From NCBI RefSeq assembly GCF_048593235.1, contig NC_133622.1, forward strand, positions 250,360,055 to 250,424,054: DNA of 64,000 bases, in the 5' to 3' direction. Below, in pieces: positions 452-17,941 of the stretch. The notes below the pieces were generated by a model. It searched no databases. It saw nothing but the letters and a program-made list of their open reading frames with translations, and was not told the origin of the DNA. The stretch comes from Sminthopsis crassicaudata (Eukaryota). Within the stretch, counting starts at the first letter, position 1; each line of letters begins with the position of its first letter. The position numbers and the translations under genes were made by a program.

Positions 452-1806
<1,355 letters not shown>

Positions 1807-11992: not shown

Positions 11993-12570
11993 GGTGCTTC
12001 TTTTTTTTTTTTTTTCCCATTGGTGTAATTTTTTTTTTTTAATTTGGAATTTTTTTTCACAGTACATATGCATGAGTAATTTTTTTTTATATTATCCATT
12101 GTAATCATTTTTTCAAATTATCCCCTCCCTCCCTCTACTCCCTCCCCTAGATGACAGGCAATCCCATACATTTTACATGTGTTACAATATAACCTAGATA
12201 CAATATCTGTGTGTAAATCCCATTTTCTTGTTGCACATTAAGTATTAGATTCCGAAGGTGTAAGTAACCTGGGCAGATAGACAGTAGTGCTAACAATTTA
12301 CATTCACTTCCCAGTGTTCCTTCTCTGGGTGTAGTTGTTTCTGTCCATCATTGATCAGCTGGAAGTGAGTTGGATCTTCTTTATGTTGAAGATTTCCACT
12401 TCCATCAGAATCCATCCTCATACAGTATTGTTGTTGAAGTGTACAGCGATCTTCTGGTCCTGCTCATTTCACTCAGCATCAGTTGATTTAAGTCTCTCCA
12501 GGCCTCTCTGTATTCCTCCTGCTGGTCATTTCTTACAGAGCAATAATATTCCATAACCTTCATATACCAT
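11993..12570 (-). mobile_element. LINE-1 3' fragment (end of ORF2, 3'UTR, A-tail)
   Basis: Minus-strand translation WYMKVMEYYCSVRNDQQEEYREAWRDLNQLMLSEMSRTRRSLYT is the L1 ORF2 C-terminus; T-runs at 11999-12040. Confidence 0.88.
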
Positions 12571-13715
12571 AAAAATAGGTGCTTCTTGACAAACACTACC
12601 CTGAAATCCCACAATCTCCCAGATGATGGGCAGATAGAGGAAAACTACGCTCCAGCCCCTGTGAACTTGGCTTGTCCCCCGCTTTCTCCACAAAGGGGGA
12701 AACTGAGGTTTAGAGCATCGAAGGTGGTCCGCCACCTTGCTAAGGGTAGGTAGGGATACAGCCAATGAGTCTCATTGCCTCAGACCAGCGTCTCCCCACC
12801 TTGTCCGTCCCTGCCCCTCAAACTTCCCTCATCTAACTTTGGGGCTCCTTAAGGTGGCTCCCATTTCAGGGTGTATAGACTGGCAGGCCTCCCCTCCTCT
12901 AGTCCTTCCCCTTCCCCCCTAATCCCGGGAACTATTTCTGCACGGAAAGGGGACAAGGGGGAAAGTGGGGTTGGTCGTGCATAGGCCCAATGGGGGCCTG
13001 AGTGTGGGTTCTGCCACCTGGATGGCTGCCCCTTCCCCCCAGGGGCCTTGCTGAAGCCTGAGGAAGCCAGTACCAATGGACGGTGAAGGCCTGCCTCCCC
13101 TCCCCCCCAGCACCTTCCTCCCCTCCTCCACCCCCCTCCCCCTCCCCACCGACCAGGCCGGCTCCTTCAGTTCAAGGCGGGCCAGGGTCAGGTCTCTCGA
13201 GCTGAGAGTCCTCCTCCGGACACCCCCCGCGTCCTGACCCCTAAGGCCGGGCCAGAGCTCGAATGGCTGCACTGGACCAAAGCAGGGCTAGGGCCATGGA
13301 GCAGGAGCTGGAAGAGAGCTCAGAGGGAGCAGCCGAGTGTTTTATAGGTGGGGAACGGAGGCCCCCAGAGCTCCCAGGGATGTTCCCATCACAGTATCGG
13401 AAGTGGGCCTTTCACCCAGGCCTGCGCGCTTCCCATGCCAGCGGGAGTGCCGAGGCTGGCCCAGGGCCCTCTTTCCCTGTGAATCACTCCTTTGGCCTCT
13501 GGGATGGGACCAAGCCTTATTTCCTGGGGGAGGGGGGGGGGGGAGAAGGGGGGGCGACCTCTCCCAGGCTCCAATCTCTTCAATCTCAGCCTTATCTCTC
13601 AGTGGGTGTCCCTGCCCTTGAATCACTGGGGAGGGGCTGGGGCCAGGATCCAGGGGGTTGTTCCCACAGCCACCCCCAGACACAGGCCCACAGCAGGTGC
13701 GGGGATAGCTAAGGT

Positions 13716-13721
13716 TTTATT
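13716..13721 (-). terminator. AATAAA poly(A) signal of the 5-exon gene
   Basis: tttatt, 7 nt beyond the TAA stop. Confidence 0.65.
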
Positions 13722-13728
13722 GGGGGCA

Positions 13729-15766
13729 TTAAGAAGGGTGAGATACAGAACCCTGGCGTGGAGCCTTCTTGTGCAGCCCCTCCCTCCCGGGTGCGCCCAG
13801 AACCCCCACATCATCCCCCTCCCACAGCTCTGGGCCCGCCCAGGGCACGGGGGAGACCGGGGAGCCGCTGGGGGCCTCGTTCAGAAGGAAGAACACAGGA
13901 GGTCCTGGGGGCCTGGCGGCCAGCCGGGAGACCTGCAGGGGGGATGGGCATGAGCTTGGAGGGGCAGCGGGGGCTGGCTATCCCCACCTCCGCCCTCCTC
14001 AGGACGGCCCCGGCCCCTCCCGATCCCAGCCCAGGGTCTCACCAGGCTTTGGAGTTTCTCCTCCAGGTCTCGGTGAGCCTTGTGGGTGCTGGCCAAGTCC
14101 TCCTGCAGCCTGGGGGTGGGGGGGAGAAGCCCTTCAGAGTTCCTCCCTCCCAGCCATCCGTGCACCTCAGACTCTGGGATCCGGGCTGTGCCCAAGGAAG
14201 GATCCGCAGCGAAACGCCCGGGGGGCCCCAGCCCTCCCTTCATATCTGCCATCACATCCCCCTGCCAGCCCCTCGTCTTCTCCGGCCTGTGGCCATCCTG
14301 GCTGATCTCTGTCCTTGCTCCACCCCTCGACTCCCTGAAGTCCCGGAGCCGCAGCGGGCAGCCGAAGGGCGGGTGGGCCGCTCCGTGCCCGTGGGGTGCC
14401 GGCCCAGAGGTCGGCCTCCCCCGCCGGGGTCACCATAAAACTTGGGGGCAAATAGCCAAGCTCCCGTTCCGGCCCTTTTCTCCCGGCCCCGCTGGGTCGG
14501 GCGAGTCCGTTTTATCCCTGCACGGACAGACTGAGGTTCACTCGGGGGCCGCAGGAGTCAGGGCCAGAAGGGACCCCAGAGTCTAAACCTCACTTGACAA
14601 ATAAAGCCAAACCCAAGGCCTGGAGAGATTCGTCCCCCCCACAGACGGGCACGCCGCTTTTGGCTTCAGCTTGCCTGCTTTTCCCATGTGCCGCCACTGC
14701 CTGCAGGGTCCTTGACCCAGGTTCGCCCCCACCCTAGCACTCCAGTGGGGGCTTCTCAATGCTCGCCTTACCTCAGGAACTGCTCCTTGAGGGTCCTCAG
14801 CTCCTCCCACACCTGCCACAGGTGGAGCTTGGGATCGCCATCTTCTTCTGTGGATCCCATGTCCAGCGAGCCCCTGGGGGGAGGAGGCAGGCTTGAGGGA
14901 AGGCTGGGGGCACGCAGCTCTAATGAAATAAGACATCCCTGCTCCACAAAGCCTCCCCCATTCCCCCACCGGCAAAGTCCCTCCTCCCCACAGCCACACG
15001 CGGACGCCCGCACGCGGGCTTGCTGTCCCCTGGTGCGTGGAGCACTTCTCAGTCTGGCCGCCCGAGCTCTAGGAGGACGGGGACATCGGGACAGGCCCTG
15101 CCCGCGGGAGACGCTGAGAGTGTTTGTTGAATGAGCGAACGCAGGCTCCTGGCGGGAGCGAGACCATGGGGGGAAGGAGGGGAAAGGCAGCCGGGAGCAG
15201 GAAACTGGGAAAGAGCACAAGGGAGAGCTGGAGCTGCCCCCCACGCTCCCAGCCCTCCACTCACCCTCCCGGAGCAGGCAGATCTGGGTGCGTCTGCATC
15301 TCAGACAGCTGCTCCTCCAGAAAAGCCGGCTGAAAAACAAACAGGATGGGGCAGCGGAGGGCAGGGATCGGCAGGGAACGGCTGCCCCAGGCTTCCTCCC
15401 CTCCCCTTCGCTTACCTGGCTCGGGGGCTCTGCCCTCTGTCTTTCCCCGGGAGGAGCATATCCGAGCTGGTCCAGGGCCCCCTTCCAGCCCAGAGCCCGG
15501 AGCTGAGCAGGACTCAGCACCCTCTGCGTTACCTCGTCAAGGAAAGCAGAAAACCTCAGCCTCTCCCCCGGGCCCCGGCCACCAATCAGGGGTCCCCTGC
15601 GCGGCTCGGGGGGGTGACCCGAGGAGCCCAGGGAGGAGGAAGGTGAGCTCTGCGAGGATTCCTGTGCCCAGGCCCCAGGAGGCTGGAAGAACTTTTCTAG
15701 GACCTTCAGTTTGCCCTCAGCCACTCCCGGAGCGCCCCTTGCCCAGGCCCCTAACCTCTGGCTCAT
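13729..15766 (-). CDS. Unexpected 5-exon gene, 262 aa, with a coiled coil resembling TJAP1/BEGAIN
   Basis: Exons 15416-15766 (ATG in gacaccATG context), 15265-15329, 14772-14873, 14043-14109, 13729-13932; all GT-AG with phases 0/2/2/0 matching; TAA followed by AATAAA at 13716-13721. Segment LHLWQVWEELRTLKEQFLR|LQEDLASTHKAHRDLEEKLQSL. Family call is from memory; an additional upstream exon is possible (acceptor near 15844). Confidence 0.7.
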
Positions 15767-16584
15767 GGTGTCTGCCGCGTACTCGGCCAAGGCCGTCCTC
15801 TTCTGGGGCCCTGACCCCTTTCTGGCTCTCCCCCGCCCGGAGTCTGGGGAGAGCAGCCCTGCAGCCGGAGCTCATCAATATTCTCTTGAACATTTGCCAA
15901 ACGTGGGGAATAGGCTCGGTTATGTCAATACCTTCAGGGACATGTATTGAGGGCTGACCTCCATCCTAGCCCTCTGACCTTGGAGAAGCCGGCCCTGGCT
16001 TTTGTGAGGCTGACTCGTCTCGCTCTGCTCTCAGGAGTGGGAGGCCCGGCCCTGCTTTTGGATTAGATGGGCACCTCTGAGATGGCTCTTAATGGGCCAT
16101 GGTCTAGAACAGTGCTTTGCACTGGGTCTGATTGAGCTGCTCCCCAACTCAATCATCTCCCATGAGCAGGAACAAAGCGGGCTCATCGGTCATGTAACGC
16201 CTTCCTGAACTCGTCCTGGGCCAGCGGGCCAGTTGTGGTGCTGCTCCTCACGCCTCGGGACGGCCAGGACAGCCTCAGTGTGTCCTCGGGATGACCAGGC
16301 TGGCCCCGGTGCTGTTCCTCGTGCCCATGAATCCTGCCTCGTCTTCAGGCCCATGTCCTCCCTGTCCAGGGCAGTCTCCTGACCTCTTAGACCTCCATTT
16401 TCCTTGGAAGCTCAGTGCCACACTGCCCCCCAACCCCCCAATAGCGTAAGCTGCTTGGAGGCACGTACCACTGGAAAAACTATTTCCTCAATTGCCCCTT
16501 GTACTGAATTGACCTTAGCGGGGCCCATGGGCCCAGGCCCAACCTCCGCGAAACCAGACACAAAACAGAGATGGAAGTAAGCGG

Positions 16585-16590
16585 TTTATT
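16585..16590 (-). terminator. AATAAA poly(A) signal ending the about 1.35-kb CDCA5 3'UTR
   Basis: tttatt at 16585-16590; first canonical signal I found downstream of the stop at 17942. Confidence 0.55.
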
Positions 16591-17941
16591 CAGCTTTTAA
16601 AACAAAACCTCCACCTTCTAACAATTACAACACTGAGCCCCTGCTGGGGAAGAGAAAGTCCTTACTGAGGTGGCTAATGATTGCTTCTCGCCTCTGGCCT
16701 GGGCACACAGGGCAGCCATCTCTGTGCACAAGAGCGAGACATGTACCAGCCAGTGACGCGACCTGGCTCCCGGCCCTCTCCCCCTGCATCCCTTCTGGAT
16801 TCATGGTACGTTTCACTGCGGGCCAAGATGCACTTCGGGGCTGGCTTTATTCCTGCCCAACAGGGGCGTGTCTGCAGTGCAGACAGACCTGTCCGTGCGG
16901 AGTCTCACATGATTGGAGAGGCAGGAGATGGCACGAGCTGGGCCTGGGAACCAGCGCTGGTGCCTCCAGACATCCCTGCAGCCCAGCCTCGGCACATCCT
17001 CCTCTTGATCTGAAGCTGGGTTTTCGCCAGAGACCACACTCTGATTCACCAAACTATAAGCCGGATTAAAATATAACTGGAAAACATTTTACAGGATAAA
17101 GTAAATCATCAATACTCATCATTTAGGTCCATCTGTTTGACTCCCGGGCCAAGGCTGAGCCCACAAGGTCGTCAGGAAGGGCAAGCAGTGCCACCTGGTG
17201 GTCAGTGGGAGACTTCTAATCGCCTCACCCTCCTTTGTGCTTCTGGGACACGACCAGCCGGGTCTTCCTCTCTGCAGACCTTCCCCTGGACAGGTCATCT
17301 AAGAGGGGTGATTCACCTTGACCTAACACATCTGTCCCATCACTTTACAAACTGTCTCTTCAAAAGGAAGCAGCAGGGGATGGTCCTGGAGGAGAGCACA
17401 ACGCCATCTCCCATGTGCCTCCCAGGAACAACAGGGCCCTCCCCGCCACAGGAAAGCTGGTGGGGACTATGGGAAAGGAAGGTTGAGGACAGGGAGACAG
17501 AATGAGAAGAATGAGAGCTGGAGGAAGCAGTGCTGTGCAACAGGGGGTGGCGGGGGCCCCACTCCACCCCCCAGCTCCCTTCCCCAACAGCCTGCTTCCT
17601 GTCACCTCTGCATCTTCCAGCCGCCACCTTAATTCTTCCTGGCTAAAACCTGGGAAAGAGCCAATGAGGCACCTCAAGAAATCCAAAGACACCCGGATGC
17701 GCCCGACCGCTGTCCACACGGCCGCTAAGAAACGGCAGTCCTCAACGACACCCCCATCCCCGCAGCCTGCCGGGTGCCCACAGGGCACAGGGACCCAGGG
17801 GGCTCAGAGGGCAAATGCCAGTGCCCCGCAGGAGTAGGGCAGACAACAAGGGCGGTCTAGAGTGCTAGAAAGGGGTGAACAAAGAAGGAACACTATGTAC
17901 AGGGAGGGGGCGATCCAGTCCAAATATCCTCTTCATCCACC

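Follow-up and report, generated by a model that had tools for sequence, protein, structure and literature searches.

A probable shortened marsupial ortholog of a third TJAP1/BEGAIN paralog between CDCA5 and NAALADL1

A five-exon gene in the dunnart

The stretch of DNA analyzed here comprises 64,000 nucleotides (nt) of the dunnart Sminthopsis crassicaudata (RefSeq assembly GCF_048593235.1, contig NC_133622.1, positions 250,360,055 to 250,424,054 of the forward strand) and is referred to below as the window. Its minus strand carries, between CDCA5 and NAALADL1, a five-exon gene (LOC141546000, Table 1), hereafter the dunnart gene. An earlier reading of the window made from the letters alone (the sequence-only reading) had proposed a hidden gene at this place, with five GT-AG exons, an ATG, a stop codon and an AATAAA; its exon lengths and other numbers proved exact on rereading. 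As read directly from the sequence, all introns are GT..AG with pyrimidine-rich acceptors, the start codon lies in the context ACCATGA, and the exons, spliced with matching phases, make up 789 nt that encode 262 amino acids (aa) and a stop. The translation is identical letter for letter (100% identity) to the 262-aa RefSeq entry that NCBI lists as "uncharacterized protein LOC141546000". The gene is thus real but not hidden, being already annotated in RefSeq as an uncharacterized protein in the dunnart and in at least eight other marsupials.

The sequence-only reading had considered the coherence of the five exons unlikely to arise by chance. Since the region is ~65% G+C and long open frames are common throughout, this argument loses much of its force, and frame coherence by itself is weak evidence for a gene. 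One such frame, of 340 aa (14768-15790, minus strand), spans exon 1, intron 1, exon 2 (not in the frame of the gene), intron 2 and exon 3; its stop codon, a TAA, overlaps the donor site of exon 3. If the introns were retained in a transcript, exon 1 and the half of the coil in exon 3 would remain in frame with each other, and a contig from RNA run X5 retains intron 2. The reality of the dunnart locus as a protein-coding gene rests on its orthologs, on the ratio of nonsynonymous to synonymous substitution rates (dN/dS) and on a spliced RNA contig.

Table 1. Elements of the dunnart gene, with positions in the window
Feature	Position	Strand	Remarks
Exon 1	15416-15766	-	351 nt; ATG and codons 1-117; carries the N-terminal motif and the LRFS block
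N-terminal motif, residues 17-29 (GKLKVLEKFFQP type)	15680-15718	-	diagnostic of the third paralog
LRFS block, residues 67-96 (ERLRFSAFLDEVTQRVLSP..LGW)	15479-15568	-	helix common to the third paralog and long TJAP1 isoforms
Exon 2	15265-15329	-	65 nt; codons 118-138 and 2 bases of codon 139; poorly conserved linker
Exon 3	14772-14873	-	102 nt; acidic linker and first half of BEGAIN-type coil; ends in split Arg codon AG|G, phase 2
Exon 4	14043-14109	-	67 nt; second part of the retained coil (LQEDLASTHKAHRDLEEKLQSL); ends in phase 0
Exon 5	13729-13932	-	204 nt; codons 196-262 and TAA; helix end, marsupial-conserved PPGPPVFFLLNEAPS...PW stretch, variable tail
AATAAA polyadenylation signal	13716-13721	-	8-13 nt past the stop codon; read from the letters

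A G-rich run (gggggagggggggggggggagaaggggggg) is located at positions 13526-13550, ~170 nt beyond the polyadenylation signal.

Orthologs and selective constraint in marsupials

A homology search that used exon 1, within the long open frame, as the query and admitted candidates of 187-595 aa retrieved orthologs from the Tasmanian devil, wombat, koala, sugar glider and Dromiciops and one MetaClust entry; a tammar ortholog came from a later search. All of them are unnamed, and none of the seven marsupial proteins has an entry in the precomputed Pfam column. In their alignment, conserved blocks are separated by variable linkers. The blocks are an N-terminal GKLxVLEKFFQP (block 1), GRGPLIGGRGxGERLRFSAFLDEVTQRVLSPAQLRALGW, whose LRFS part is invariant or nearly so (block 2), VWEELxTLKEQFLRLQEDLASTH.AH..LEEKLQSLVSRLA (block 3) and PPGPPVFFLLNEAPS...PW (block 4).

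The gene order in the devil, koala and Dromiciops is ZFPL1 (opposite strand), sororin/CDCA5, the ortholog of the dunnart gene and NAALADL1. A SAC3/GANP domain at 596-1750 (plus strand) and a Peptidase_M28 exon at ~5.7-6.3 kb (minus strand) confirm that SAC3D1 and NAALADL1 are located on the low-coordinate, expected side of the window. The proposed retention of the gene in marsupials is borne out by orthologs at the same position in at least eight species besides the dunnart, with the frame intact.

The dunnart gene was aligned to the devil, koala and Dromiciops loci, and dN/dS, a check named by the sequence-only reading, was calculated by the Nei-Gojobori method. In the annotated frame the values were 0.29 for the devil, 0.33 for the koala and 0.42 for Dromiciops, whereas the two shifted frames gave 0.72-1.60. 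Inside the conserved blocks dN/dS was 0.13-0.19, versus 0.41-0.66 in linkers and tails, a contrast that is partly circular, as the blocks were picked from the protein alignment.

Identity between dunnart and devil was 0.83-0.96 in exons, 0.74-0.77 in introns 1-3 and 0.86 in intron 4; exon 1 (0.89) may be compared with intron 1 (0.77), and exon 2 stood at 0.83. The most conserved exon is exon 4, with identities of 0.96 to the devil, 0.87 to the koala and 0.90 to Dromiciops. The exons of the two latter species align with those of the dunnart, while introns 2 and 3 mostly do not. Exon 5 has indels of 6-7 nt between species, including a 7-nt insertion in the devil relative to the dunnart, and the C-terminal tail is evidently unstable among marsupials. 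In the devil gene model (L001:11809-13375), exon 5 is left after ...PWQG for an additional exon ~1.4 kb downstream, and the C-terminus differs as a result. We conclude that this is a coding gene whose moderate constraint is concentrated in a small number of modules.

Transcription of the dunnart gene

Contigs from five runs (X1-X5) were compared with the gene model. In run X5, one contig joins position 14108/14109 to 14771/14772, exactly the junction of exons 3 and 4, which lies within the coil; the skipped piece ends CT..AC, i.e., GT..AG on the minus strand. Junction support, which had been proposed as a check of the model, was thus obtained for this intron, while no junction was observed in X5 for the other three. 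In runs X1-X4, exons and introns were evenly covered, as genomic DNA would be.

RNA depth over the dunnart gene in X5 was 3-6, versus 120-190 on the adjacent 3' end of CDCA5. Over positions 16531-17900 of the window, X5 depth rises from ~6 to 120-190; this region is probably the 3' end of CDCA5, ~0.9 kb upstream of the ATG of the dunnart gene and on the same strand. Another X5 contig covers exon 1 and continues unbroken for 700 nt upstream toward CDCA5, and read-through transcription from CDCA5 into the dunnart gene is possible. In the libraries examined, expression is low and partly unspliced. Elsewhere in the window, positions 12000-12590, between the dunnart gene and NAALADL1, showed contig depths of 10^3 to 10^6 in all four runs, with many variants and loose ends; this piece looks like an interspersed repeat.

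One may ask whether the exons belong to a neighbor, as alternative 5' exons of NAALADL1 or as a 3' extension of CDCA5. All three genes are on the same strand, and the contig that spans exon 1 and the 700 nt toward the 3' end of CDCA5 would fit such an arrangement. However, the dunnart gene has its own ATG, stop codon and AATAAA, separate gene models exist in four marsupials and in a turtle, no joint to NAALADL1 or CDCA5 exons was seen in the RNA contigs, and the MS... start, like the N-terminal motif, has its counterpart at the beginning of the turtle protein described below. We regard it as very improbable that there is no independent gene here.

Relatives in other vertebrates

The seven marsupial proteins were combined in a profile, which gave 41 matches among 1.84 billion representative proteins. 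Outside the marsupials, these included a turtle protein of 867 aa (E 5e-16) and a gecko protein of 881 aa (E 5e-13); in both, three stretches matched and were collinear. Further matches, 450-1100 aa long, came from a salamander, frogs, lizards, an alligator, bichir, sturgeon, eel, other teleosts, a manta and a shark. Among the names under which the sources list them are "tight junction-associated protein 1-like" (turtles), "TJAP1 protein, partial" (bichir) and "si:ch211-276i12.4" (teleosts). A search for TJAP1/BEGAIN-like proteins had been proposed along with the gene; relatives of the matched proteins are named TJAP1-like and carry Pfam BEGAIN_coil. No placental, monotreme or bird protein was found among the 41 matches, whether judged by source name or by sequence, in these protein sets. 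The gene had been proposed to be absent from human, and the lack of placental proteins among the matches agrees with this as far as protein sets go; human is not known to have an annotated gene between NAALADL1 and CDCA5.

Reading of the sequences sorts the relatives into two groups, true TJAP1 and what we call the third paralog. True TJAP1 proteins have an N-terminal KPYRKAPPQHRE, and their long isoforms in sharks, teleosts and sauropsids have a large pre-coil exon bearing a block of the (E)EKLxFSxFLDEIT type. Third-paralog proteins begin with ...GKLxVMEKFFTP and carry an LRFS block of the same kind near residues 280-320. Their coil follows the pattern ...WEEL..LKE.F.RLQEDYS.TQ.TNQ.LEEKL..., and their tail is long. 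In the marsupial protein, the N-terminal motif of this second group, the LRFS block and the coil follow one another in the same order. TJAP1 and the third paralog coexist in the koala, Dromiciops, sugar glider, Kemp's ridley turtle, manta and several lizards and frogs; since the same species carry both, the two are paralogs.

The Pfam family BEGAIN_coil (PF27583), which is named after BEGAIN, is on record for the third paralogs of a turtle, a lizard and pike as well as for TJAP1. Our local Pfam scan gave no BEGAIN_coil match even for the turtle third paralog (P0009), the model apparently being absent from that copy of Pfam. The half-length marsupial coil may fall below the cut-off of this family. 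Pfam searches with separate exon translations produced nothing useful.

Could the marsupial protein be an unrelated small coiled-coil protein, its likeness to TJAP1 and BEGAIN being generic heptad similarity? Its weak Pfam matches are to unrelated coiled-coil families only, e.g., ATG16 and Lebercilin, and in protein-language features it is like the testis coiled-coil proteins SPZ1, CBY2 and TSKS. Against this stand the three collinear blocks, two of which are not coiled coil. The intron positions, phases and exon length, identical to those of TJAP1 and the turtle paralog, and the NAALADL1 synteny shared with the turtle paralog (both presented below) contradict an unrelated origin, to which we give hardly any credence. 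Kinship with SPZ1, CBY2 and TSKS was set aside as well: the counts of shared features were below the same-family level, all structure neighbors had template modeling (TM) scores <0.4, and sequence, introns and synteny point elsewhere.

Tests of family membership and orthology

Comparison of the marsupial profile with the third paralog by hhalign gave a probability of 98.7% (E 1.5e-16), with 48-50% identity over 42-46 columns. The LRFS block appeared as a second local match to the third paralog, with 53% identity over 32 columns, and aligns to the long TJAP1 isoforms too. With these isoforms the coil alignment had a probability of 95.9% (E 5e-9), which upholds the alignment with the TJAP1 coil proposed by the sequence-only reading.

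The coil exons of the dunnart gene read AG|G, a 67-nt exon and then ...CTG|GT. A phase-2 intron within an Arg codon (F-x-R|LQ), the 67-nt exon and a phase-0 intron are found identically in the dunnart gene, in the turtle third paralog and in leatherback TJAP1. In both turtle genes, the third paralog and TJAP1, a 108-nt exon encoding 36 aa comes after the 67-nt exon; the dunnart gene is without it.

The turtle third paralog (locus L004), which itself carries Pfam BEGAIN_coil on record, is located directly upstream of a same-strand gene with PA, Peptidase_M28 and TFR_dimer domains, i.e., a NAALADL1-like gene. The marsupial copies (devil, koala, Dromiciops and the window) are likewise directly upstream of NAALADL1 on the same strand. 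At the northern pike locus (L006), a tetraspanin gene and a HOOK_N gene of 1660 aa, and not NAALADL1, come after the third paralog, so the teleost neighborhood differs. The pike HOOK_N gene might be of the CCDC88 type, which would fit 11q13/14q32 paralogy.

A search of 201 fetched proteins with the pattern (V/M)(L/M)E(K/R)FF(T/Q)P found it in 26, all of them marsupial orthologs or third paralogs. VLEKFFQP stands at residue 22 in the marsupial proteins that possess an N-terminus, and in tblastn, residues 30-48 of the turtle protein align at the N-terminal motif of the dunnart. Conversely, the TJAP1 peptide KPYRKAPPEHRE is present in 105 of the fetched proteins, all TJAP1, none of which has the EKFF motif, and it is absent from all marsupial orthologs. 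The Pilt domain (PF15453) did not match in the marsupial proteins and is not on record for the non-mammalian third paralogs, while every TJAP1 listed has it; since third paralogs are without it, Pilt defines TJAP1 proper and not the wider family.

A tree of TJAP1, third-paralog and marsupial sequences was built from 76 columns (LRFS block and coil). The TJAP1 clade was supported at 90/97, and the marsupial clade (100/98) was outside of it, in a polytomy with the third paralogs of turtle, gecko, newt, bichir and sturgeon.

Outside the shared features, TJAP1 (Pilt, TJP4) differs from the marsupial protein. Both have a BEGAIN-type coil and the same intron positions around the 67-nt exon, and the LRFS block also occurs in TJAP1 where sharks, teleosts, reptiles and birds have long isoforms of it. 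However, TJAP1 has the KPYRKAPPEHRE peptide, the Pilt domain and the ERYRQDCNLAVQLLKC exon, none of which the marsupial protein has, and it is located at a different locus; marsupials have a TJAP1 of their own, e.g., P0171 in the koala and P0167 in Dromiciops. BEGAIN itself is linked to the marsupial gene through BEGAIN_coil, which the non-mammalian orthologs of the gene carry. The BEGAIN locus is in the DLK1 region (human 14q32), and the C-terminal part of the protein is of the Pilt type. Among the 120 matches listed from a homology search, no BEGAIN sequence was present.

The long TJAP1 isoforms (P0023, P0159, P0176, P0118, P0113; L005:1001-2509), 900-1070 aa, were seen in sharks, teleosts, turtles, lizards and birds. 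As in the third paralog, the LRFSxFLDEIT helix and a SLxRSLxF...KGILK...RK(A/S)xSxE block are present here, encoded by a giant first coding exon. Among the TJAP1 isoforms listed, those of marsupials and bats (533-568 aa) lack this part.

Several points weigh against the marsupial gene being a functional ortholog of the third paralog. In the tree, marsupials are not resolved as the sister of tetrapod third paralogs, and the third group as one side of a branch has a support of 45/44; separation from BEGAIN rests on synteny and motifs and not on the tree. The marsupial proteins have no Pfam record, and a Pfam scan of the whole protein returned weak generic coiled-coil matches far below the cut-offs. 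The tail after ...EEKLQSL, compared with the post-coil region of the third paralog, gave an hhalign E value of 0.38, which leaves homology of exon 5 unsupported. On the side of RNA, the X5 junction concerns one of four introns at a depth of ~4, the contig that bears it continues into intron 2, pieces of intron 3 occur at similar depth, and exon 5 had no coverage in this run. Dimerization of the protein and all of its partners, discussed below, are what we infer.

Taken with these reservations, the three collinear blocks, the introns and the synteny agree with the proposal of a third TJAP1/BEGAIN-family member at the NAALADL1-CDCA5 position. The marsupial gene LOC141546000 is, in our judgment quite probably, a real coding ortholog of the third TJAP1/BEGAIN paralog, which includes si:ch211-276i12.4 and the turtle gene LOC120369056, in a shortened form that retains the first part of the coil. 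The suggestion of an ancient paralog retained in marsupials holds insofar as relatives are present in sharks, rays, fish, amphibians and reptiles, but what marsupials have is a shortened copy of 262 aa.

What the marsupial copy kept and lost

The third paralog (si:ch211-276i12.4; LOC120369056 of Mauremys reevesii) has in common with the marsupial protein the VxEKFFxP motif, the LRFSxFLxEIT helix and the first half of the coil, together with the phase-2 intron, the 67-nt exon and the phase-0 intron and, in the turtle, a same-strand position upstream of NAALADL1. It differs in its length (550-1100 versus 262 aa), in having a 108-nt exon for the second half of the coil, and in its tail, whose PPxxFxD, TAFxPWKQ and YQxAQ motifs and ...DSTLL end are missing from the marsupial protein. 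The first exon of the turtle gene encodes ~460 aa, versus 117 in marsupial exon 1. When the turtle protein was compared with the window by tblastn, only exon 1 (E 6e-7) and, weakly, exon 4 were matched, and nothing was found for turtle residues 530-867. Exon 5 might be the last turtle exon in collapsed form, but given the hhalign result for the tail this idea remains unproven.

The layout of the third paralog in sharks and rays, bony fish, amphibians and reptiles consists, in this order, of the N-terminal motif, a large exon with the LRFSxFL(D/N)EIT helix, the coil and a long disordered tail, the coil being of the BEGAIN type and divided over exons of 67 and 108 nt. The marsupial gene retains the motif, the LRFS helix and ~45 residues from the start of the coil; the greater part of the large exon, the 108-nt coil exon and a recognizable tail have been lost.

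Such losses raise the alternative that the marsupial gene is a decaying relic, i.e., an eroded third paralog with low transcription, perhaps by read-through from CDCA5, and a non-functional open frame. About three quarters of the ancestral protein are gone, and the low RNA depth relative to CDCA5, the contig that runs from exon 1 toward CDCA5, the retained introns, the variable C-terminal tail and the exon 5 indels are all in line with decay. Yet the frame is intact and the exon structure is the same in at least nine marsupials, including both the Australian lineages and Dromiciops. The dN/dS values, low overall and lower still in the blocks, are unlike those of the other frames (about 1 or more), and conservation peaks over the exons, introns 2 and 3 of the koala and Dromiciops being scarcely alignable. 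We therefore consider a relic quite unlikely and continue with a shortened, coding ortholog of the third paralog.

Predicted structure and possible mode of action

An AlphaFold2 run on a 23-row alignment predicted helices at residues 16-26, 66-91 (66-83 and 86-91) and 153-201, with the remainder disordered and a mean predicted local distance difference test score (pLDDT) of 60; the pLDDT of helix 153-201 was >90. Judged by eye, hydrophobic residues 164, 167, 171, 174, 178, 188, 192, 195 and 199 of the long helix follow a regular heptad pattern. On this model, the marsupial protein would be mostly disordered and would probably dimerize through a leucine-heptad helix of ~49 residues. The dimer would present two short conserved helices (EKFF and LRFS) to partners, the protein most likely acting as a small dimeric adaptor.

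TJAP1 (Pilt) and BEGAIN bind the guanylate-kinase domains of DLG/PSD-95 scaffolds. The papers searched for BEGAIN and guanylate-kinase domain binding gave no location for the binding region. The coil of TJAP1 is predicted to homodimerize, and its N-terminal KPYRKAPPEHRE peptide binds the Mint PTB domain (PMC10820826). Lacking both the Pilt domain and the N-terminal peptide that binds Mint, the marsupial protein probably cannot cover the whole range of scaffold interactions of TJAP1 or BEGAIN, and the regions that would bind DLG guanylate-kinase domains are probably missing from it.

Since the TJAP1-type dimerization zipper is kept while the tail and the second half of the coil are gone, mixed dimers are conceivable. 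The marsupial protein might then be a natural "coil-only" modulator, whose heterodimers with full-length TJAP1 or BEGAIN would tune or block scaffold function, although we hold this to be an unlikely outcome. If true, it would be a lineage-specific regulator derived from a truncated ancient paralog that placentals lost altogether.

A third member of the TJAP1/BEGAIN family

The dunnart gene model is already public, as are the turtle and fish relatives, which are loosely labeled TJAP1-like and have BEGAIN_coil on record, while the marsupial proteins are nameless and domainless. TJAP1 and BEGAIN have been treated as a two-member family whose functions are poorly known. The regions of TJAP1 (6p21.1), BEGAIN (14q32) and the dunnart locus (11q13-like) presumably also hold KLC4/KLC1/KLC2 and PPP2R5D/C/B, and we take this paralogy to fit an origin in the vertebrate whole-genome duplications. 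The function of TJAP1 has been called "essentially unknown" (PMC10820826). In the paper library searched, the sole trace of the third paralog was si:ch211-276i12.4, which is among the genes that mark a mature neuron cluster in the zebrafish tectum (PMC8869500).

The locus described here ties the unnamed marsupial proteins to a third, vertebrate-wide member of the family and indicates that the LRFS helix is an ancestral family module that persists in the long TJAP1 isoforms of non-mammals. It also illustrates the divergent fates of an old duplicate, which is of full length in reptiles, amphibians and fish, reduced to three conserved modules, yet still under selection, in marsupials and without a detectable protein in placentals. 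The marsupial protein would thus be a minimal natural construct with which the function of the conserved modules may be probed.

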